From positions 1 to 64,000 of the forward strand of contig JAKMXF010000306.1 in NCBI GenBank assembly GCA_024704765.1: DNA of 64,000 nucleotides, written 5' to 3'. The DNA is from Oopsacas minuta. Lineage: Eukaryota > Animalia > Porifera. Of the stretch, positions 2,978-48,976 are shown piece by piece. The position numbers and the translations under genes are program-made. Each line of letters starts with the position of its first letter. Within the stretch, counting starts at the first letter, position 1. The notes under the pieces were generated by a model, which did not search any database, was not told the DNA's origin, and saw only the letters and a list, made by a program, of their open reading frames with translations.

Positions 2978-5900
2978 CTGTCGCGTAGGATTTTGACCCG
3001 CAATACAAAATCCTAATAGCATATCCATGGTGTGGGTCAAAATCCTACGATGTAATATATGCGTAGGATTTTGACCCGTATCGAAATGTATTATTGTCGT
3101 AGGATTCTGACCCTAGGGTAATCTTACTTCTTTGTTATTTGACTTTTCGAAGTCCATACACTCTCATTACCTAATTACCACTAATGTAGGTAAAGTAATT
3201 CACTTTAGACTAGCTATACGTATACGTAACTGAATAAACAAGTCAATTTAGAGTTAGATTCTAGAAAGTAGTGAACTTGTTTGATAACATGTAAACTATA
3301 TTCCCACTACGTATTACAAATTTACAATATGTATAATTATCCAAAATGCCAAAAATAGACAGTGTATATAAATATTATATAATAATATTACTTGGACAGA
3401 AGGTGGTAGGTATTTGATAATTGTATATAATAACTCATAATAAATAATATAATTTAACATGTCAATCTATATATTGCAATATATTCTATCAAAAAAATAA
3501 CAAAAATTTTGCAAGCATTAGCATGATGATGAATATTGGGAGTATCTTAAGTACGAATTGTAGGCGATTTCATCTTTGCCCATTTCTCTATACTTCCTAA
3601 CAAGCTTTAAGGAATATACCACTGAAATATGTTCATCTATTGGACAAGCGTAGACTATGCATTTGTTACGGGAGTCTTGGTATAATGTTGGTACACATAT
3701 AGAGGTGAAGTGAAAACCGCGAGCCTCTGGCACGCTGCATACTCCTGGATAACACTAGATTTCTATAAACAAAACAAGTCAGCTGCGGTGGCCTCCTCCT
3801 TCCCCTTAGAACCACCCCCTAATACTAAACGTTTAACGTTAACCTCATCTAGTTTATATGTGCAGTGTAGGAGCGAGTTTGATGTGATTGCGATCACACC
3901 AAATTCGATTCTAAGCTGCAACATAAACGAATGCGTACAATCAATCGTAATTTAACAGACACGCGAGGAGCTAACGGACCCCGAACGACCACAGACAAGG
4001 AGACATTAAAAATAAAAAATTGAAAAGAAACTCGCTTGTATCTGATTCCTAGCTGTATTTCGTCCCGGCGTAGACTCGTCAGTTGCGCTCCTTTCTCGCA
4101 ATATACTTAGATGGTAGAGTGATGATATTCACCACTGGGGATGTGCTGTTGCAGGTCGCGTTTCCATTATCTGGGCTCGCTATGATAGGGATTGCGTTGC
4201 CTGAATAACCTCGGGCAGAGCTCTCCACAAGGCTCGATGTACCTTGCATTTGAGTGCTCTCGAATGGTGGAAAAGAGTCGTAATTCGCTAAGAATTAGTC
4301 AGAAGAGTGCAAGAGATAGAATGTAGTATTGAGTGATCCAATGAAAGTGTCACAGTCCCAAAGTTGGATAATTGGTTCTCTCATTCGTCATATTTATAGA
4401 ATTACCCGTTTTGGTAAAGGATTGAATAGAAGTGTCTATTACTCAATATACTAAAGCCAGCAAGTTGGTAGTGAAGTGTCCGTTGGTTGTGACTGATGGT
4501 AAAGTGTTTGTCAATATCACTTGCAAAAATGTCTGGCAATTCGGGTAGATGTCCGATTTCAATTGCTAGCATGACAGATATTGACTTGAATTGGCCAGAT
4601 ATCCTCTCTAAGACAGCAGTAGTTGATCCACAAGACTTGCATTTAATAGGAACGAGACTTCGATTAACAGATGATTCCAGGTTTGTAATAACGCCTTCTA
4701 TATTACTAATCATGGATTGTGTGTCAAAGATATTAGTGCATTGGTGGCATTGGAAGATAGTGAAATATTTGTCGTTACACAAATCTTCTGTTCGTAAATA
4801 TTTGATGATGTTACCCTCTGACCCAAAGAAATCCTAAGACCGTATCAATCCTGAGGAATCATAAATAACTTCATGCCCAATTTAGTAGCAACATATTCTC
4901 GAAGTTTCTCAAATTCACAATTAGCAGCCAATTGGAATATGTAGTGGAATTTAGCTTCAATATGTGTACTTCCGATTAACTTCAGTGAGCCTATGATGGT
5001 TGCTTTATTCGAACTAAAAATAGCCAATATATTGTCGATAGAACAGGTGTTAGATTGCACGATGTTGTTATACTCTCCTCCCCATTTAGGATATGGGATA
5101 AGATCTGATGCATTTTGTATAGATTGTTCTGGTATTCAATGATCTCATGAACATGCTCAGTTGGGAATATTAACTCAATTATTACTGCTAATAGAACAGC
5201 AATTGGATAGTCAAGATCTCTTCGTGTCTCTCCAGGTATTTCAGTAGGTAGGAGGAACGATATTCTGTGTACCAATTACCGGCTGATACAGCAAGTTCAT
5301 CCTTAATCTCAAAATTTAATTCGTTTGGTGGGTGGTAAGAATATAGTAAATTCAATGAACTTAGAGGTGCAACTTTTGTAGCGAGTTTCTCATGCAGTTG
5401 GGTTAAGTAGGTGTTATTGACAAGGGCCGTTAGTTAGAGGTTTCAATTGAAGTAGCTCAGAGTCGATATTTTCATAGATTGAGTGTTGTTGCAGTGTTTC
5501 AAATGTTTCTTCCATTGTATCCAGGTTCAATATATCATCCAATGAGTCTAAATACATAGTAAGTATGTGAAATGTAGGATTGCTATTACGTAATAATCGA
5601 ATCAATACAGAACACAGCTAGTTTTATATGTACGTAATCATGGGCTGAGTCAATTAGTTATAGTTCCTCAAGATTTCTAATTATGTCCCGGAAATATGTA
5701 TAAATAAAAAATATCATTCAAGAATATACCTTCATTAGCTTATTCTCTTGAAAGTAAATCCCTTGCACTTTCTGACAAAATTCTTCTTTTCTTTAGCGAT
5801 CTCTTTTGATTTCTGGTGGATAATATTCGTCTGGAGGTATCCACGAATTGTTTCATACTCTGTCGCATCCATAATGAAAAATGTCAAAAACAATTATAAG

Positions 5901-9021: not shown

Positions 9022-10262
9022 CACAGTGGTTTGGGGCACAGAATAGGAAAATTATTCATAGTCATTGAATGGTGTTTTGAACTTCGAATTTGCTTGCCAT
9101 TACTTACTTTCTATGCAATCCAAAAATAAATGTGATTGAATGCCTATAGTATATACGCTGGGTGTCAAAGTCTATAGTACTTACATTACGAAAATGTATA
9201 ATTGTGGTTTGAAAATATTCATCAAATTCAATCAGACTGCTTTTGATTTATTTTGTTGTTTCCTCTTCCACAGCCTGACTATAGCATTCCTCATTCAATT
9301 TACACATTTAAATACTTGGAAAATAATTCCAACTTTCCAGATTTATTCCCTTTATATTTTCCACAAAATTTTTCAAAATTCGATTACATATTTCCGAAAT
9401 TAGAAGAGGCATCAAAAATACAGATACCATCAGATAGCTTAGAATTTTCAGGAGTTATTCAAATATGTAATATATTTGACATACTAAACTATTTAAGTGA
9501 GCTTCAATGCGCAACTTAAATTTATGTGTAAATTCCATTTTATATTTTCCGGTGCTAGGCTACTAGTTACATCGATTATTATGATAAATGATGTACCTGA
9601 CCACTTCATTATGATAACTGTATTCGTTCAAAAGTAGTTAGATATTAACTACAAACGTTGATAAATTAATTAGTTAGTTAATATTCATTTATCAAATATT
9701 TATCAATCGCTGAAGGTAAAATTCCACGAAACCGCCGTGATTTAGCTAATATTCTGAAAGTGAAGGACAATAAACTTCCCGATATAGTAAATGAAGTTGT
9801 TAATGTCTTAAATATTGAAGAATATTTGGAGACTCCGTTACTTCGTATGTAAAATTGTTGAAGTTAATTTACCAAAATCCAAAAAGTCAATAGATCAACT
9901 CTTAAATGAGTAGTCGACCTCCGAATTCTTTAGGAACTGAGACCTAAGAAAGTTTGTCTTCAACCTTCATTTGGATCATCAGATTTTCAACCTAGCAAGC
10001 CATTGTTAATGATTACCTTAAAACAACAATAATCCGGGTTATCATCCAGTTTGGAACAAATGATCGAAACTGCGATGACCGATAACGCTACGCCCATAGA
10101 GATTGCCGCACTATTATTGGAACTCATAGCCAATGAGGAAGATAATAGTCCGGTTGCAAAGGTTGCTAAAGAAATTATAAGCGGTAGGTTCAGTTATCAT
10201 ACTGCTCAAGTAGTCCCAGTTGAGAAAGTTCTGTTCCTGGATCTACTCGAAGTCATATCAAT
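9022..10262 (+). mobile_element. 5' part of a RAG1-like/Transib element (heptamer-type end plus NBD-like coding remnant), interrupted by a Tc1 insertion
   Basis: CACAGTG terminus at 9022. 10051-10266 reads ...IAALLLELIANEEDNSPVAKVAKEIISG...VVPVEKVLFLDLLEV, collinear with the N-terminal part of the relic at 33.8-34.0 kb (VALLLYILAVEQIG...IVSPEKSTFL). Confidence 0.5.
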
Positions 10263-39427: not shown

Positions 39428-40421
39428 TTATTAGATTTGAGTTTGATTGGACAGAAAATATAGATAACACTAATATAATAAAAATAATAGCTTGTTACTA
39501 AAACCGGAAGGATTTAATAATTGTTCTAAATTCACGAATATTGAAAATTGTTATGTTAAAGAACACGTTGAGAGAAGGTAATAGCTAAAGAACTCATAAA
39601 TCAGATGAAAACTGACCAAGTTGTGAAATATTTCCTTACTGAGCCAAATCCAATGGGGAAAATTGTATTAGTCGCTTTACTGGAATAATGCTGCTGAATT
39701 CTATTCAAACTACCATTGCATATATTCAATATTGTGGTTATCATCACTTTGGCAAGTTGATTATTTCATGACTATACTGGTTTGCGAAATTAGAAACCTA
39801 TAATTAATTGATAGAATAATTTAATGAATGTGGGCTGGGGATTCATTCCCCTTACTTCCTTGAATTTGAAACGCTTGAATGAGCGTAGCGAGTAATTGAG
39901 CGCAGCGGAATTAGCTCGATTAACACATGAAGCGGTCTCAAGACTTCATTTCATCCGAAGTACTTCGGAATGCGATCAAAAATTAGTATGTAGGAATAAC
40001 TTACAAATCATTATTTCCAAGTATTAGTGCCAATCAGGCCCAGCGGAAGCTCGAGAGAGGTGAGGGGGGGGGGCTTGAATCGTGATGATCGCAGAGTAAA
40101 TACATTTAATTTGAGGGAATAGAGAACCCCTCAAATATACATCACGAGAACAACTCCCCTAGAGATTGAGGTATTTATTAGTGAGTAGCGCATGCGCTGC
40201 ATTTGAGTAGCACATGCGCTACATTAGGATTATTGGTAAGTCATATTTATAGATACACATTACCATTTTAACCATAGTTACCCAAACTGCTGAATTGAAT
40301 GTGATTAGATAAGTTTCGAAAGCACATTACGACAAGTGGTCATTGGAATGCTGGTGCATTTATAATGTATAGAAGTAGATATATAAATTTATACCATTCG
40401 TTAGATAATTTCATTTTGGAA

Positions 40422-43400
40422 ATGGCTGAAAAAGTAACTTCACAAACTGGATCTGATAATATACACCCAAAAAAATGAAAAATCTCGGAGAAAGAAGATA
40501 TCAGCTTCATCACATTAGACATCGACAAAGTATGCCTATCAGAAGGTGAATCATTTAAATTGATAGAATCAGATGTACCAACATGGTCAAAACCAGCTGA
40601 TAATTATATTCTTAATTCCTTATGCTTTCAAGCAAACTTTAGTTGCTTGTTGATTCAATATAATTTTTCGCATAGGCAGTGTCAACCTGATTGCTTCTCA
40701 GAACCAGAAATGAAACAAGTAGAAATGCCTATAATTGACCAGTATGTAAAACTATTGATATTGAAGTCTCACATATATAAGTTAGAGAATAGTGAATATC
40801 TTATAATTGCAGATTATGATCACTCACAAGGTAAATATACGTTATTATCACTATTATTGTTGTCTGTTTGCATGTTTGTCTCTGTGCCCCGGTTCGTAGG
40901 GCTCAACACCTTTATTTCGGTTAATCGGGTCAAATGGCCTGGTCCCAAGTGACCCTATTAATCGGAGTCTACTGTACATTTACTATTCTCACTACCAAAA
41001 CTAAACATTATGTATTTCAAGGAACCATTATACTAAACAAAAGGAGAATCATAATTGAAACAAACAGCAATCTATGCGCCAATTGTTATAGTGATACTTG
41101 TTCTCATTTTCAAGTATTTGAACTCTGTTCACAAAATGATTGTTTGCAAGTTTGTGAAGCAAACATTCTAGAAGACATACTATATTATTTCCCAAGTCCT
41201 AGCGATATCTTTCTGTTGACAGATGATACTTTTCACAACTTCCAATTAAATAATGATAGGTAGTTATGTTGTTCTTGTTCTTCAAAGTGCAAACAACATT
41301 CTAGACTCTATAATATTCTCGAAAATACTGGATCAAATACACAGAAAAAGGTTGAATATACACGATATCAACAAGACCAACACCATTGAATCTAGATGAA
41401 AGCCAAATAGCAATTTAAAACCACCAGCTCTGCCATGGCATCAATTTACCTTTATTATGTATCCTGAATAGGAATTATGTGACTATGGTTTCAAATTCAA
41501 TGAAGAGGAGAAGCTTAAACTAGAGAAAGTTGGAATAGTTATCTATTTAGAAATGATATTAATTAACTCAAAGATTACAAAGGTATATATTTATCATCAA
41601 TGAACCATTCGCTCGTTCACAATTTTAATTTAGTATGGGGGGTTATCCTACGTATTTAGCCGTTGAAAACAAGTCTTTGCAATTATAAAGGAATTTCAAT
41701 AAATATTTGGTCTACATATAAGATTGTTCATTCGATTGCAATGAACTCGTCCCAATTTACCTCCTCCCTAAATTTGCCTGTGCTTGGTCCTCCGTAATTA
41801 TATTGTAAGTATATAGTTTACAGTTCAAGATGCAGTGGACCTTGCAATTGCTTGGCAGTCTTCGAAGGTCAGAACACTTTACTGTTAAACATCAACAACA
41901 AGTACTTTGTTCATTACAGTTTGTTATATGATTATAACAAGTTGATGATCATGTCTAGAAATACTTTGTACGGTTACTTGAGGTATGTATTGTTTAAAAC
42001 CATATTCTTGATAAATTAAAATTCCTATATACATACAATCTAATTCGTCGTTTTACTCTTTAATGTCAAGAACAGGGAGCTATCAGAATGGGTAGAACGA
42101 ATACATTCCATTGTCGCATTGCTTATCAGGCATGGAACGCCTATCTAAGAACAGTAGACATAGATTATGACTCGAACTACATATGTCCAATGTGTAAAGA
42201 TCATCCCGATGTGATAACTTTAGATGGCAGAGCGATGGGAACAATGAAATCGGTACCAAAAGTGGATGCAAAATTCGATCAGGATCAACAATACCTATGA
42301 TCCCATTTTCAGATCGTGTTTTTATCCCCGACACAGCAATTAGAAAGCAACTCCTTAAATACAGTTCTGAAGGTTTGACAGAAAATACATTAAAAGACCT
42401 ATTGAAGTCTATTCATAAAGAAATGGCTGATTATATTTGATTTAGTTCCATTAGGATAGAAAATTTAGTGACTATAAGTGAAGAATATATACACGTTAAG
42501 AAAGTCTTAAAACTCCTTTGCCATACAGATCCAATATCAGGAATATTCCAATCCTCTCTGCTGGAACCGAGTGAATGAAAAGCAATAGCTCTTCTTACCA
42601 ATGGAAAATTAGCAAGTGAAGATTCCTTAAGTTCAATATATCAGAAGATGTTTACATTGGATATCTTATTCAATTCTATCAAACCTAGTGAAGATATCAC
42701 ATGCACAGGGTTTGCCACTTTACATCCCAAAGTTTTCTCGCTGTTGAAAAGAATCCTGACACAAAAAGAGAGTTTATTTAGTAGAGCGTCAAGAAAATTG
42801 GTGGAATATTCTCCACAAAGCGAAAACTATTACAATTATTTCCCAGCATTCACAACAAACTACATGTAAGTTAAAACTTGTAATTGTGTTTATACTGAAA
42901 ATATTAATTGCTATTCAACAACTTTTTTATATTATACCATTCTATTATACTTGTACAGGTGCCAGTATACGAAAATCTAGAAGTTGAGTCAGCTGAACCG
43001 TGTCTCAAAAATTTTCCAACTCACAAAAGGTTTTCCCCCGGAATAGTTGCAATCGTTGTAAACACAGGATTTATTATGGTTTCCAAATCCTCAGACTACA
43101 CGAATCTACAGTTGTAATTTATAATTAGTTAATGACCATATTCAGAGAACAGCCAAAAGTGATCTTCTACGATAATACTTGCAACTTACACAAAATATGT
43201 ATGAAAAGGTAACTGCACATAACAAATTGGGTATAAATGATAAATAGTCGAGATTTCAACTAGAAATTTATTTGTGATTTCTTATATAGGGACCCCAAAG
43301 TATTTCGTAAGATAACATTTCAGATTGATCGATTCCATTCTACAAACCACAAGTGCAATCCCTCTTATTCTTTCAGATCAATTCAGACTGATGAGATGAA

Positions 43401-43556
43401 AAAGCTAAACTCACAAATTGTGAGCAGTTGTTTTCATCACTAAGAAGGATAGCAACACAAATCGTATACATGCGTATAGATAATGTATTCTTCACTACAA
43501 GATATTTTCTAGCATGTTTGAATCTACATATTCTATCACAAAATAATAATATATGA
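40422..43556 (+). pseudogene. KDZ-family transposase with Cys-cluster (CxC-like) N-terminal region, multi-exon, decayed
   Basis: CSGPCNCLAVFEGQNTLLLNINNK, YICPMCKDHPDVITLDG (D, 42223), CLKNFPTHKRFSPGI, PKVIFYDNTCNLHKICMKR|DP (D, 43171), QIDRFHSTNHKC, NSQ-CEQLFSSL. GT-AG introns, e.g. 40831-41021 and 43209-43289. Confidence 0.85.
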
Positions 43557-43718
43557 AAATAGTTTATATGTTAGGAGACTCAAGACAATTGTGACAATAA
43601 AAGTTATCGATGTCTTTGTCAATATCTTCAAGTCCTACACATGGTTTGTGGAACCATTAAGACATTTGGGACATTCAACCATATTTTTTGACGCGCAACT
43701 GAATAGATGACACAAACA

Positions 43719-45275
43719 CTATAACTTTATCTTTAAATCTGTCCCTAGATTAGTAGTCAGGGGAGATAGTAATACTATGCTTTCTAACTTAGGAAAGGGT
43801 GCTAAAATTCCGCTGTTGAAACTATCAGTTAGGTGAGATCTCATTCTTGACTGTTTCCAGTATACTTGGGTTGGGTCGCCTCCCATTGCTATTGTCAAAC
43901 AGACTGCAGCTGCAAATAAACCACAATCCGCCTCACCTCTTTGCTGTTGAATAGGAGCAAGGGCGACTTTCAGCTCATGATCAGCATCATTCCCATATAG
44001 AAAGTCCAATTGCACAGCTAATTCACCAGATATTCTCCCAGTAGATAACGAATCATATAAAGGTACATGCCCTTCAACATCAATACTGGAGCAAACCCAG
44101 TGAAGTGCACCATCGTGATGCAGCTGTATACTAAGACGAGGAGCTTTGACGAATTGACGATTCTAAGAATTAATTGAATATCAAATATTGATTACAATTG
44201 AAAAATTTAAACCGAGAAACTCACTTCGGAGAGAATAGTATCCTGAAGTCCCTGTAAATGTGGGAAATTCTTCTTCAGTAATGTCTACAAGTACATATAT
44301 GATATGAGAACATTTTCTAACAAAATGGATTGAATTTCAATGTACAATAAACTTAGACAGAATGCATTAATGGTGGTGCCTGTTAGAAAAGTATTACACT
44401 TGACAATTCAGAAATTGACAAGTTTTTCTCATTTAAACTAATGGGAGGAGTGATTATTTGAATAAGATCCAATGGTTTAACTCCGAGTAATGTCACCAGA
44501 CTGGATGTTGGGATGGGTGTTTGAGGATCTGAAATAGGTTTGTTCGAAGCGATAACGGGTTGCTGAAAAAACTCATCGAAGGAATCATCACTAGTATCTA
44601 CATCAGATTCTTGGTGTACTACATCTCTAGTGAAATCAAGAGGAGATCTAGATCGGTCACGATAGATATCATGTCGCGATGTTTGAGAAGAGCTTGGAGA
44701 CTTCTAAGATTGAGGGCGAACTGAAACTCGCGCTTTCATAGAGTAATCCTTATATGATTCTATTATCATACGCAGATGAATCTTACATGCGCTTTTTATG
44801 TTTTCGAAAGGGACTCTTTCGGGCCAATAAGGTGGTTTGAGAGAAGGATCATTCCAAAAAAACATACCGTTCCCTAAATTACAGATATATAATCAGTGAC
44901 CCATATAATTATATAAATTCACACCGTTGACTTACCAGTTGACACTTTTATAATCGCAGAAACAAGTCTTCGCAGTCCCTGTACATTATAGCCAGATATA
45001 TCTTCATCTAATAGCTTGAGGATTTCGTGATCACGGACAGGCTTTGATAACGCCGACGTACTTGTAGATATTTGGTTAGTCAGTAGAGTTCTTGCTATTT
45101 CATCGCTATTCCTAGTGATATAGGTTTGAAATTTTTCTGGACCCAAAGAGCCAAGCTTTCCATGCCATGAAAATACAGCTCCGGCATATTCACCCGTTAC
45201 TGAACGAAACTCAGACAATATGTCTGTCAGTACCATTATAGCATTAGTCTTTGTCAATTTGGGTATCTTTGGCAT
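43719..45275 (-). pseudogene. NRF1/Ewg-type DNA-binding domain fused to a Ulp1/C48-like cysteine protease (one premature stop, probable frameshift)
   Basis: After splicing the 62-bp intron 44874-44935 it reads LRRLVSAIIKVSTGNGMFFWNDPSLKPPYWPERVPFENIKS, which aligns without gaps to the NRF1 segment LRAFIPEMLKYSTGRGKPGWGKESCKPIWWPEDIPWANVRS. The C-terminus has HDGALHWV, LYDSL and QQQRGEADCGLFA. TAG at 44704-44706. Confidence 0.8.
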
Positions 45276-45622
45276 TTTGGCTAATCAAGGGTACAGAATG
45301 GGAAATCAAGAGGAAACGCTCATTGAGTAAAGTATAAAGTTAATTGAGAAACATATTTAGGGATTTGGCTAATAAAGGAAGTAGAAATAAGTAACAAAAC
45401 TCAAAAATAAATATCAGTACCTGCGAATTTAATTACACTATAATAGGACGTAATGTGAGAGCCTACTTTTTTCCAAAATTTCAATTACAAATTAATGCAG
45501 CGCATGCGCTACTCATTTTTAAATATATGAGAGATTACATTTGTTCTCAATGCAAATAAAAGTTGAGCATAAGTTAGGGCAGTTCAAACTGAGTGATCAA
45601 ATCAATATATATAATTCTGTAA

Positions 45623-46097
45623 TCTATATAAAAAAATCTCAATCGTTGTCTGTCTGTATTTTTGTCCGTGGTTAAGGAATGGATTTAGGGTATGCAAATT
45701 TGAAATTGTCACATAGCTATGTATTATTATGTTCATCAAGGAAGTAAATAGAATTCAAATACAACTTAACTAAATATATCGCACATGCTGAGTCCGATTT
45801 TCACACTTTTGAATGAATCATATGTAAATTTAGTCCTGTTTTTATGAATACATAAAGTAAACAATTTGTCCATATCTCAAATATATGTACAGGCTTGCTC
45901 AAAACGGCTACCGAGGGGGTTAATCTTACAAAATATTTCAATAATATGTGTGCCTTATACACATATCCGTGAATTACACTGTTTTAAATACATCTATATT
46001 ATAATACTCAAAGGGGGCCGTCAATTTGGAGAATAATTGATACCTCGAGGCGTAATGCGGGGAGTTTATCGACAAGCGACGAGCCAAATGCTCGTAG
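45623..46097 (+). mobile_element. Possible non-autonomous Helitron-like element
   Basis: A|TCTATATAAAAAAATC...gtctgtctgt start and a terminal hairpin acgagc-caaat-gctcgt. The 3' end is not a canonical CTAG. Confidence 0.35.
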
Positions 46098-46607
46098 AAA
46101 TATATAACAAAATTGGAATTATACTATAGAAGATCCTCCGACTTGGACTGTTGCCAAACATATTACTCAAATAAAACAAAAATGAATTTATATCAAAAGA
46201 TCACAAAATATTATCGCGAACCATGCACGCGAAATTGTATGTACCTAAAGATTCACATAAAAAGTGGGGCGGTTCAGGCCGCCCCTACTCCGCCCGCCCT
46301 GGTGCCAATATGCTTGAAACTAGAGACAGTGCTTCGCGCCTTTAAAAATCAAAAAAGTGAGAAGAAATGAATCACCGGTTATTCATTCCTCCTATCTTTC
46401 TTAATCTTCAAAATATTCCATTAATTTATTATAGATTACAATTTACGGAAACAATTATAATGATGAGAAAAGCTGCTTCTCAACGAGTTACTTAACGGTG
46501 CGTATACTATTTTCAATATTCGTGAATTTAGACCAATTTTTAAATCGTTATGGCCTTTAGAAACAACCAAGTAATACGTTTAAATACAGAGACGTCGCCA
46601 CGGAATA

Positions 46608-46752
46608 GGGGGCAATGCCCCCCCTGGCAAAATCTCGTGTCCGGGGCAATGCCCTCCTGGTAAATTCTCGTGCCCGGGGGCAATGCCCCCTGGTAAACTC
46701 GCGCCCCGGGGCATGACTACTCTGGTAAAATCATACCCTAGGGCATGCCCCT
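46608..46752. repeat. GC-rich ~33-bp tandem repeat (4-5 units) behind a hAT-like end
   Basis: Units ggggcaatgcccc...ctggtaaa...ctcgtgccc, preceded by cagagacgtcgcca at 46587. Confidence 0.7.
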
Positions 46753-47315: not shown

Positions 47316-48976
47316 CTGTTGCGTAGGATTTTGACCCGCAATACAAAATCCCACTAGCATATCCATGGTGCGGGTCAAAATCCTACGATGTAATATATGC
47401 GTAGGATTTTGACCAGCATCAAAATGTACTACAGCCATAGGATTTTGACCCGTATCGAAATGTATTATTGTCGTAGGATTTTGACCCGCATATGATGTAT
47501 TATTGTCGTAAGATTTTGACTCTAAAGTAATCTTACTTCTTTGTCATTTGACTTTTCGAAGTCCATACACTCTCATTACCTAATTACCACTAATGTAGGT
47601 AAAGTAATTCCACTTTAGACTAGCTATACGTATACGTAACTGAATAAACAAGTCAATTTAGAGTTAGATTCTAGAAAGTAGTGAATTTGTTTAATAACAT
47701 GTAAACTATATTCCCACTACGTATTACAAATTTACAATATGTATAATTATCCAAAATGCCAAAAATAGACAGTGTATATAAATATTATATAATAATATTA
47801 CTTGGACAGAAGGTGGTAGGTATTTGATAATTGTATATAATAACTCATAATAAATAATATAATTCAACATGTCAATCTATATATTGCAATATATTCTATC
47901 AAAAAAATAACAAAAATTTTGCAAGCATTAGCATGATAATGAATATTCGGAATATCTTAAGTACGAATTGTAGGCGATTTCATCTTTGCCCATTTCTCTA
48001 TACTTCCTAACAAGCTTTAAGGAATATACCACTGAAATATGTTCATCTATTGGACAAGCGTAGACTATGCATTTGTTACGGGAGTCTTGGTATAATGTTG
48101 GTACACATATAGAGGTGAAGTGAAAACCGCGAGCCTCTGGCACGCTGCATACTCCTGGATAACACTAGATTTCCATAAACAAAACAAGTCAGCTGCGGTG
48201 GCCTCCTCCTTCCCCTTACAACCACCCCCTACAGCAAGTTTACCCTTAATCTCAAAATTTAATTAGTTGGGTGGATGGTAAGAATATAGTAAGTTCAATG
48301 AACTTAGAGATGCAACTTTTGTAGCGAGTTTCTCATGCAGTTGGGTTAAGTAGGTGTTATTGACAAGGGCCGTTAGTTAGAGGTTTCAATTGAAGTAGCT
48401 CAGAGTCGATATTTTCATAGATTGAGTGTTGTTGCAGTGTTTCAAATGTTTCTTCCATTGTATCCAGGTTCAATATATCATCCAATGAGTCTAAATACAT
48501 AGTAAGTATGTGAAATGTAGGATTGCTATTACGTAATAATCGAATCAATACAGAACACAGCTAGTTTTATATGTACGTAATCATGGGCTGAGTCAATTAG
48601 TTACAGTTCCTCAAGATTTCTAATTATGTCCCGGAAATATGTATAAATAAAAAATATCATTCAAGAATATACCTTCATTAGCTTATTCTCTTGAAAGTAA
48701 ATCCCCTTGCACTTTCTGACAAAATTCTTCTTTTCTTTAGCGATCTCTTTTGATTTCTGGTGGATAATATTCGTCTGGAGGTATCCACGAATTGTTTCAT
48801 ACTCTGTCGCATCCATAATGAAAAATGTCAAAAACAATTATAAGTGTTGATGTTGAACTCTAGAAACAAAGTAAAATGTTGGTATGTGCATTAGGAAGTC
48901 ACCCATGTATAAATATGAAAGGTTGATATTACTTGATTTGCAATTGCTACTTTCGGGGCAAAATCCTACGCAACAG
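47316..48976 (-). mobile_element. Internally deleted copy of the 2978-6049 element
   Basis: Same termini CTGTTGCGTAGG...CCTACGCAACAG, 2-bp TSD AG. Near-identical to 2978-3821 joined to 5289-6049. Confidence 0.9.

Follow-up and report, generated by a model that had tools for sequence, protein, structure and literature searches.

Results

A decayed two-gene transposon with intact ends

The window (the whole 64-kb stretch of DNA that was analysed) contains a decayed copy of a two-gene KDZ-type DNA transposon (Table 1). A broken transposase gene lies on the plus strand and a broken accessory gene on the minus strand, the latter encoding an NRF1-like domain, a Ulp1-like protease and the remnant of a PHD finger. 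Four public contigs, including one of Oopsacas minuta (GCA_024704765.1), carry close relatives of the 118-aa ORF that opens the accessory gene (45275-44922). With the ORFs of a better-preserved copy (L003) as tblastn queries, the same convergent layout was recovered in six elements (the window element, L002, L003, L005, L007 and L010): NRF1-like exon 1, exon 2 with the linker and the Ulp1/PHD part follow each other on one strand, and six to seven transposase exons lie tail to tail with them on the opposite strand.

Table 1. Positions of the transposon, its genes and its end motifs in the window.
Feature	Position	Strand	Basis or remark
Whole element, 5362 nt	40168..45529		Homology limits, empty-site contigs, diverging contigs
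Left target-site duplication AGAGATT (7/8 if counted as 8 bp)	40161..40167		Joint with 7 letters fitting either side
Right target-site duplication AGAGATT	45530..45536		Pairs with 40161..40167
Transposase-side terminal 20 nt, GAGGT + ATTTA..GTGAGTA	40168..40187	+	Terminus type common to subfamilies
NRF1-gene-side terminal 20 nt, CATAT + ATTTAAAAATGAGTA read inward	45510..45529	-	Terminus type common to subfamilies
Palindrome GCGCATGCGC, left-end unit 1	40188..40197		Positions 21-30 from terminus
GCACATGCGC, left-end unit 2, one mismatch	40210..40219		22 nt after unit 1; direct-repeat families D3/D7
Palindrome GCGCATGCGC, sole unit of right end	45500..45509		Positions 21-30 from terminus
KDZ-type transposase gene (by homology), several exons, TGA 40476-40478 and several frame shifts	40422..43553	+	tblastn of L003 transposase exons
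Accessory gene, exon 1: MADS-like dimerisation domain and helix alpha5 with LRR motif	44936..45275	-	118-aa ORF, donor GTAAGT
Accessory gene, 62-nt GT..AG intron splitting the NRF1-like domain	44874..44935	-	O. minuta relatives P0006 and P0012 join the same parts
Accessory gene, exon 2: NRF1 linker2 and alpha6 equivalent (FWNDPSLKPPYWPERVPFENIKS...), premature TAG 44706-44704	44707..44873	-	PDB NRF1 and Pfam Nrf1_DNA-bind matches
Accessory gene, Ulp1-like (C48) cysteine-protease part	43722..44162	-	Peptidase_C48 17.2 bits, below cut-off; 69% identical to L003 Ulp1/PHD ORF
Accessory gene, frame-shifted remnant of C-terminal PHD finger	43585..43656	-	tblastn to L003 Ulp1/PHD ORF, another frame

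The transposase is, judged by its relatives, of KDZ type. One L003 transposase exon (10014-10241) gave a weak match to PF18758 (17.9 bits, E 0.0027, cut-off 26.6), and an annotated O. minuta gene at L004 9615-10040, opposite window positions ~43130-43555, has a precomputed match to the same family; the L004 stretch that holds this gene is 94.6% identical to window 45529-42856. The transposase pieces of the window taken alone gave no PF18758 match. The C-terminal ORF of L003 scores above the Pfam PHD cut-off (27.4 bits).

The window copy is dead, as stops or frame shifts interrupt both of its genes: the TGA stands where L003 has an arginine, and the TAG where relatives have a glutamine. Its ends are intact. 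Eight positions at which nearly all of the contig depth carries one extra base (40676, 42080, 42293, 42959, 43055, 43417, 43656 and 44191) are among the 40 best-supported differences to public contigs; the extra base is present in most or all runs and mostly extends a run of one to three bases. The one-base gaps of the window copy, several of which shift the reading frame, may be real decay or, where they lie in short base runs, small assembly errors, and some of the frame shifts may not be real. Contigs of run X4 show GT..AG joints at 41581-41814 (plus strand) and 44163-44224 (minus strand) that look like spliced transcripts, which suggests that the family is transcribed. In L001 (8395-9702), the accessory gene runs on into an OTU cysteine-protease domain (Pfam 35.7 bits) where the others have the Ulp1-like part, as if one deubiquitinase-type protease had been exchanged for another.

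Borders and insertion site

The limits of the element at 40168-45529 rest on the limits of homology, the AGAGATT duplication, an empty-site joint and contigs that diverge after 45529. Comparison with public contigs by blastn placed the limits of homology to L003 and L004 at window positions 40166 and 45529. Public contigs from the same organism join 40160 to 45530, with seven letters that fit either side; this joint represents an unoccupied site in a paralogue of the flanking repeat. Directly past 45529, nine contigs continue into unrelated sequence, and the contig depth summed over the element exceeds that of the left flank several-fold. Read from the outside in, one terminus starts with CATAT followed by ATTTAAAAA.. 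and the other with GAGGT followed by ATTTA... The window element has both the 7-8-bp target-site duplication and the inverted ends of KDZ transposons. Perfect 8-bp duplications flank relatives (AAATCATC in L003 and CTTTCTTG in L010), and L005 has GTTATAC.

A 44-nt inverted repeat (91%; 39508-39551 and 46506-46549) brackets the KDZ element at ~0.6 and 1.0 kb. As the empty-site contigs show, the DNA that flanks the element is itself repeated, and the KDZ element was therefore probably inserted into an older element of ~1.7 kb.

Rare palindromes lie just inside both termini

The 12-mer AGCGCATGCGCT, which spans the 10-mer palindrome GCGCATGCGC, occurs at 40187-40198 and 45499-45510, two copies versus 0.00 expected in the 64-kb window. 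On the left side, GCGCATGCGC is followed by a one-mismatch version, GCACATGCGC, and the two left-end palindromes are spaced 22 nt apart. When up to one mismatch to GCGCATGCGC was allowed, no match was found in the 64-kb window beyond these three element-end copies; dinucleotide-preserving shuffles of the window had 0.15 matches on average and none of 100 shuffles reached three. The 12-mer and its one-mismatch tandem copy (40209-40220) were thus re-found where the preliminary description had placed them, and its view that the motif is rare and confined to the element ends within the window is borne out by these counts.

The two exact palindromes are embedded in inverted-repeat arms of 32 nt (40172-40203 and 45494-45525) that are 91% complementary, which confirms that the flanks are true inverted repeats, and over the terminal 36 nt the two element ends agree at 30 of 36 positions. 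It had also been stated that the element ends are themselves NRF1 palindromes. The motif is indeed present at both ends but it is subterminal and not terminal: counted inward from 40168 and 45529, it occupies positions 21-30.

The accessory protein carries a predicted NRF1-type DNA-binding module

We examined the relationship of the accessory protein to NRF1 by profile searches and structure models. Because the intron splits the NRF1-like domain, exon 2 of the window alone scores only 17.0 bits with Pfam Nrf1_DNA-bind (PF10491), under the gathering cut-off of 23.5; it aligns with human NRF1 residues 217-248 (PDB, E 0.004). For the O. minuta relative P0012, whose exon 1 is 42% identical, the score exceeds this cut-off (25.4 vs 23.5 bits, E 1.4e-5), and seven of nine exon-2 pieces match the Pfam family individually (best E 6.2e-6). 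A profile built from the nine exon-2 pieces matched only NRF1 in the PDB (E 8.7e-6), as did the profile extended over helix alpha5 (E 1.5e-7). For exon 1, HMMER searches of the whole library returned 49 representative relatives; the profile of exon 1 alone (A1) had no NRF1 match in the PDB, and the dimerisation domain is recognisable by fold only.

The fold of the DNA-binding domain was modelled on a paralogue, P0053, and not on the broken copy of the window. The AlphaFold model of P0053 residues 75-175, made without templates (pLDDT 75), superposes on NRF1 in 8k4l_B with Z 9.1 and an rmsd of 2.7 A over 78 residues (NRF1 186-277) and on 8k3d_A with Z 8.4 (78-79 residues for the two chains), the next PDB match having Z 4.0. 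This model has the fold of the DNA-binding domain solved in 8K3D and 8K4L. The NRF1 dimerisation domain is known to resemble the MADS box of SRF (PMC10810270). Consistent with this, the model of P0012 residues 1-170, confident over residues 1-110 (pLDDT ~90), had 8k4l_A residues 102-173 as its top VIA-align match, at a moderate Z of 6.0, followed by SRF (5.9) and MCM1 (5.7), and contains a MADS-like dimerisation domain. With Foldseek, NRF1 ranked fifth for the first model and the global superposition was poor because the linker is flexible, so that VIA-align was needed.

In the NRF1 complex, R206, N242 and R244 read the TGCGC half-site, R206 at the central TG and N242 and R244 at the outer CGC (PMC10810270). 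The R206 equivalent (the first R of LRR, GLRRL) is kept in all 18 rows that cover the column and N242 in all rows but L006. The R244 position is K in the window, L001-L004, L010 and P0012, T-K in L007, Y-K in L005 and R in L006. Altogether, the profile matches to NRF1 alone, the two models and the Pfam score of P0012 uphold the earlier assignment of an NRF1-like domain and indicate that, by homology and predicted fold, the encoded domain is a genuine NRF1-type dimerisation and DNA-binding module.

The transposon protein resembles the NRF1 / Erect wing / P3A2 family (PF10491; 8K3D, 8K4L) in the order of its parts, a MADS-like dimerisation domain followed by an alpha5-linker2-alpha6 DNA-binding domain, in the equivalents of R206 and N242, in the W224, KP..WP and S245 positions, all of which are kept, and in the motif itself, since the putative target GCGCATGCGC is identical. 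Unlike the members of this family, it is encoded by a transposon present in multiple copies and has a Ulp1-like protease and a PHD finger as fusion partners in place of an activation domain; it shares only ~15-18% sequence identity with them, and R244 is replaced by K (T-K or Y-K in other subfamilies). In our own reading, the computed alignments ending near NRF1 residue 249, ~12 residues between NRF1 249 and 262 also seem to be missing, among them the backbone contacts K253, W258 and T259.

The palindromes are conserved in the ends of related elements

The motif count was extended to the window plus eleven loci (251 kb), with relatives drawn from five other assemblies. All 23 exact copies of GCGCATGCGC in these 251 kb lie in element ends, where the palindromes form tandem units of 21-22 nt at both ends. 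L003, at ~77% DNA identity to the window element, has three units at one end and two at the other; L007, whose exon 1 is 36% identical in protein sequence, has one and three units and a perfect 28-nt inverted repeat; and L010 (43% protein identity) has two to three units at one end and ~16 at the other. The preliminary description had proposed to look for the motif at the ends of related elements with the same domain, and these three elements all have GCGCATGCGC in subterminal tandem units. The refuting outcome that it had named, absence of the motif from such ends, did not occur, even in subfamilies with no more than 36-45% protein identity, and its interpretation is supported in this respect. 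The decayed L001, L002 and L004 carry versions of GCGCATGCGC with one mismatch or one deletion.

The core is identical in the window/L003, L007 and L010 types and the spacers between the cores are completely different, which indicates selection on the core. Outside the units, the outer ~20 nt (CATAT or GAGGT, then ATT(T)AAAAAGT) are common to all subfamilies: the CATAT-ATT(T)AAAAAGT terminus was seen in L001-L005, L007, L008, L010 and L011, and the GAG(G/C)T-ATT(T)AAAAAGT terminus in L003, L005, L007, L009 and L010. These comparative data already contradict the idea that a GC-rich palindrome in an inverted repeat merely resembles an NRF1 site. Palindromes are common in terminal inverted repeats, as this idea has it, but the exact 10-mer recurs in the ends of subfamilies whose spacers and proteins have diverged, and expected counts are near zero. 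As a control, we scanned metagenome data for the terminal 16-mer, which yielded 72 unrelated contigs and no new elements; none of these 72 contigs with the terminal 16-mer plus CATG shows such a palindrome within 200 nt. A coincidental resemblance is therefore very improbable.

Some subfamilies depart from the exact motif. L005, with 44% protein identity and the same architecture, has six and five 22-nt units carrying ACACATGTG(C/T), in which the central CATG never varies; its protein has N-I-Y-K at the place of N-I-K in the window. At one L011 end, ACACATGTGC precedes numerous ACACATGCGC units; this end, at 4413, lies in a scrambled or nested region and is not pairable with one gene. Over the subfamilies with 22-nt units the consensus is RCRCATGYGY, the CATG centre and the residue that reads it (R206) being both invariant, and the outer palindrome positions vary together with the 244 region. 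This co-variation is suggestive only, because there are few subfamilies (four or five), L007 keeps the CGC form with T-K, and the L011 units are hybrid. L006, whose protein reads S-V-R at positions 242-244, was excluded from the motif-to-residue comparison.

The element most likely makes its own end-binding factor

A separate DNA-binding protein encoded by the element and repeated subterminal motifs at both ends, the two features of a two-component transposon, are both present. Since the element appears to encode a genuine NRF1-type DNA-binding protein, the factor that binds its ends is most likely its own product, and we propose that the palindromes are probably the subterminal binding sites of a two-component cut-and-paste transposon, bound by a dimer of the element-encoded protein. 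The ~20-nt terminal sequence, conserved across subfamilies, would be the presumed site of recognition and cutting by the KDZ transposase. Next inward come one to ~16 tandem 21-22-nt units, each of which would offer its 10-bp palindrome to a homodimer of the accessory protein, so that one homodimer could sit on each GCGCATGCGC. The predicted N-terminus of this protein, in which a flexible linker joins a MADS-like dimerisation domain to a DNA-binding domain whose arginine and asparagine may read the TGCGC half-site, would be suited to this arrangement. With units two helical turns apart, the dimers would share one face of the helix; they would tag the two ends and assist in pairing them or in recruiting the transposase.

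Several observations fit this proposal less well. L007 keeps GCGCATGCGC although residue 244 is replaced by T-K, and the relation of residue to motif is thus not simple; R244, one of the three base-reading residues, is not conserved; and the half-and-half L011 units (ACACATGCGC) show that the variants could be tolerated CpG decay and not a changed specificity. In addition, host NRF1 should recognise the palindromes too, and the cysteine-rich regions of the KDZ transposase could bind the repeats themselves.

The palindromes lie 205-235 bp upstream of both inward-facing start codons, and binding there could therefore control the genes of the element as well; a role as promoter or in autoregulation is compatible with end binding and may exist alongside it. 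Their position, a core that equals the vertebrate NRF1 consensus (PMC10810270) and the spliced-looking contigs would also suit a different reading, in which the palindromes are captured host-NRF1 promoter elements that drive both inward genes and the NRF1-like protein of the element does not touch them. We consider such a purely host-driven promoter unlikely, because it leaves the element-encoded domain as a coincidence and the variant arrays unexplained: L005 and L011 have ACACATGTGC or ACACATGCGC arrays instead of the consensus, and changes in the GCGC repeat weaken NRF1 binding in the solved complex (PMC10810270). A placement fixed 20 nt from the termini and arrays of up to ~16 units are moreover typical of transposon end-binding sites. 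The variant palindromes (ACACATGTGC, ACACATGCGC) likewise favour binding by the element's own protein, the first of the two alternatives in the preliminary description, over a promoter served by host NRF1 only.

The transposase offers another candidate reader of the repeats. Its N-terminal exons are cysteine-rich, and it might itself bind the subterminal repeats through its own zinc-chelating regions, leaving the NRF1-like/Ulp1/PHD protein to another purpose, for example tethering to chromatin or to host promoters that NRF1 occupies, or a defence against SUMO-dependent silencing; the PHD and Ulp1 parts do point to chromatin functions. However, it is precisely the NRF1-family motif that the repeats contain, the insertion sites that we observed are AT-rich and lack an NRF1 site in their vicinity, and the conserved terminal 20 nt are a better candidate for recognition by the transposase. 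We therefore regard this division of labour as quite improbable and retain the accessory protein as the likely end-binding factor.

Relation to known transposons and possible origin of NRF1

Accessory DNA-binding proteins that mark transposon ends are known from PIF/Harbinger elements (a Myb-like protein) and from En/Spm (TnpA, with subterminal 12-bp repeats). These systems share with the present element a second, element-encoded sequence-specific DNA-binding protein and repeated subterminal motifs at both ends; they differ in transposase superfamily and in DNA-binding fold, and here the motif is palindromic with a putative dimer as its reader and the accessory protein has protease and PHD parts. 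With KDZ transposons (Kyakuja, Dileera, Zisupton) the element shares the type of its transposase, as assigned by homology, a 7-8-bp target duplication and short imperfect inverted ends; published duplication lengths are 7 bp in Kyakuja and 8 bp in both Zisupton and Dileera (PMC12730594). Unlike them, this is a glass-sponge (animal) element with a separate convergent accessory gene and subterminal palindrome arrays, and the outermost 5 nt of its two termini differ (CATAT vs GAGGT). In the literature that we searched, no report connects an NRF1-type domain with KDZ or Zisupton elements or with transposons of any other kind, and none describes the NRF1 DNA-binding fold outside the NRF1/Ewg family or ties it to a mobile element.

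Here a transposon encodes this fold and has the cognate motif in its ends. The element is a candidate for the evolutionary origin of an essential animal transcription factor, or for a very ancient side branch of it. It is conceivable, though we think it doubtful, that NRF1/Ewg and the transposon protein share a mobile ancestor, such that NRF1 would be a domesticated KDZ end-binding subunit and its GCGCATGCGC specificity an old transposon-end specificity; events may also have run in the opposite direction, the element having captured host NRF1 exons. The family offers a natural two-component system in which to study how the poorly characterised KDZ transposases find their ends, and its natural variation (RCRCATGYGY palindromes versus residue 244) can be used to work out the recognition code of the fold. 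Each insertion also seeds strong NRF1-type sites and could rewire NRF1-dependent regulation in glass sponges.

Other repeats and ends at these loci

A second element end interrupts the O. minuta copy at L004 10317-10390 (CATATATTAAAAAGTAC, followed by three units of 22 nt whose cores are of TGCGCATGTC type), precisely at the point where the match to the window ends, and a RAG1-like ORF and a divergent KDZ transposase lie downstream of it. L008 (209-280) and L009 (8494-8560) have the conserved terminus with AGCGCGT every 11-12 nt; no recognisable DNA-binding exon 2 was found at these two loci, which hold long perfect inverted duplications that are possibly assembly artefacts. Directly upstream of its NRF1-like gene, L006 (6765-8900) has 69 tandem 31-nt units with TGAC(A/T)GTCA, and no inverted partner or recognisable terminus was found for this satellite. 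At L005 6790-6845, a solo decayed L003-type end (GCGCATTCGC, GCACATGC) adjoins an LTR-retrotransposon insertion, 1.1 kb from the L005 element.

In the window, summed contig depth over 45613-45800 is ~10x that of the KDZ element, suggesting a far more abundant repeat immediately to the right of the element. Further along, 47320-47530 and 46608-46690 contain tandem 36-nt units with internal inverted repeats (TGCGGGTCAAAATCCTACG) and GGGGGCAATGCCCCC three times at 34-nt intervals.
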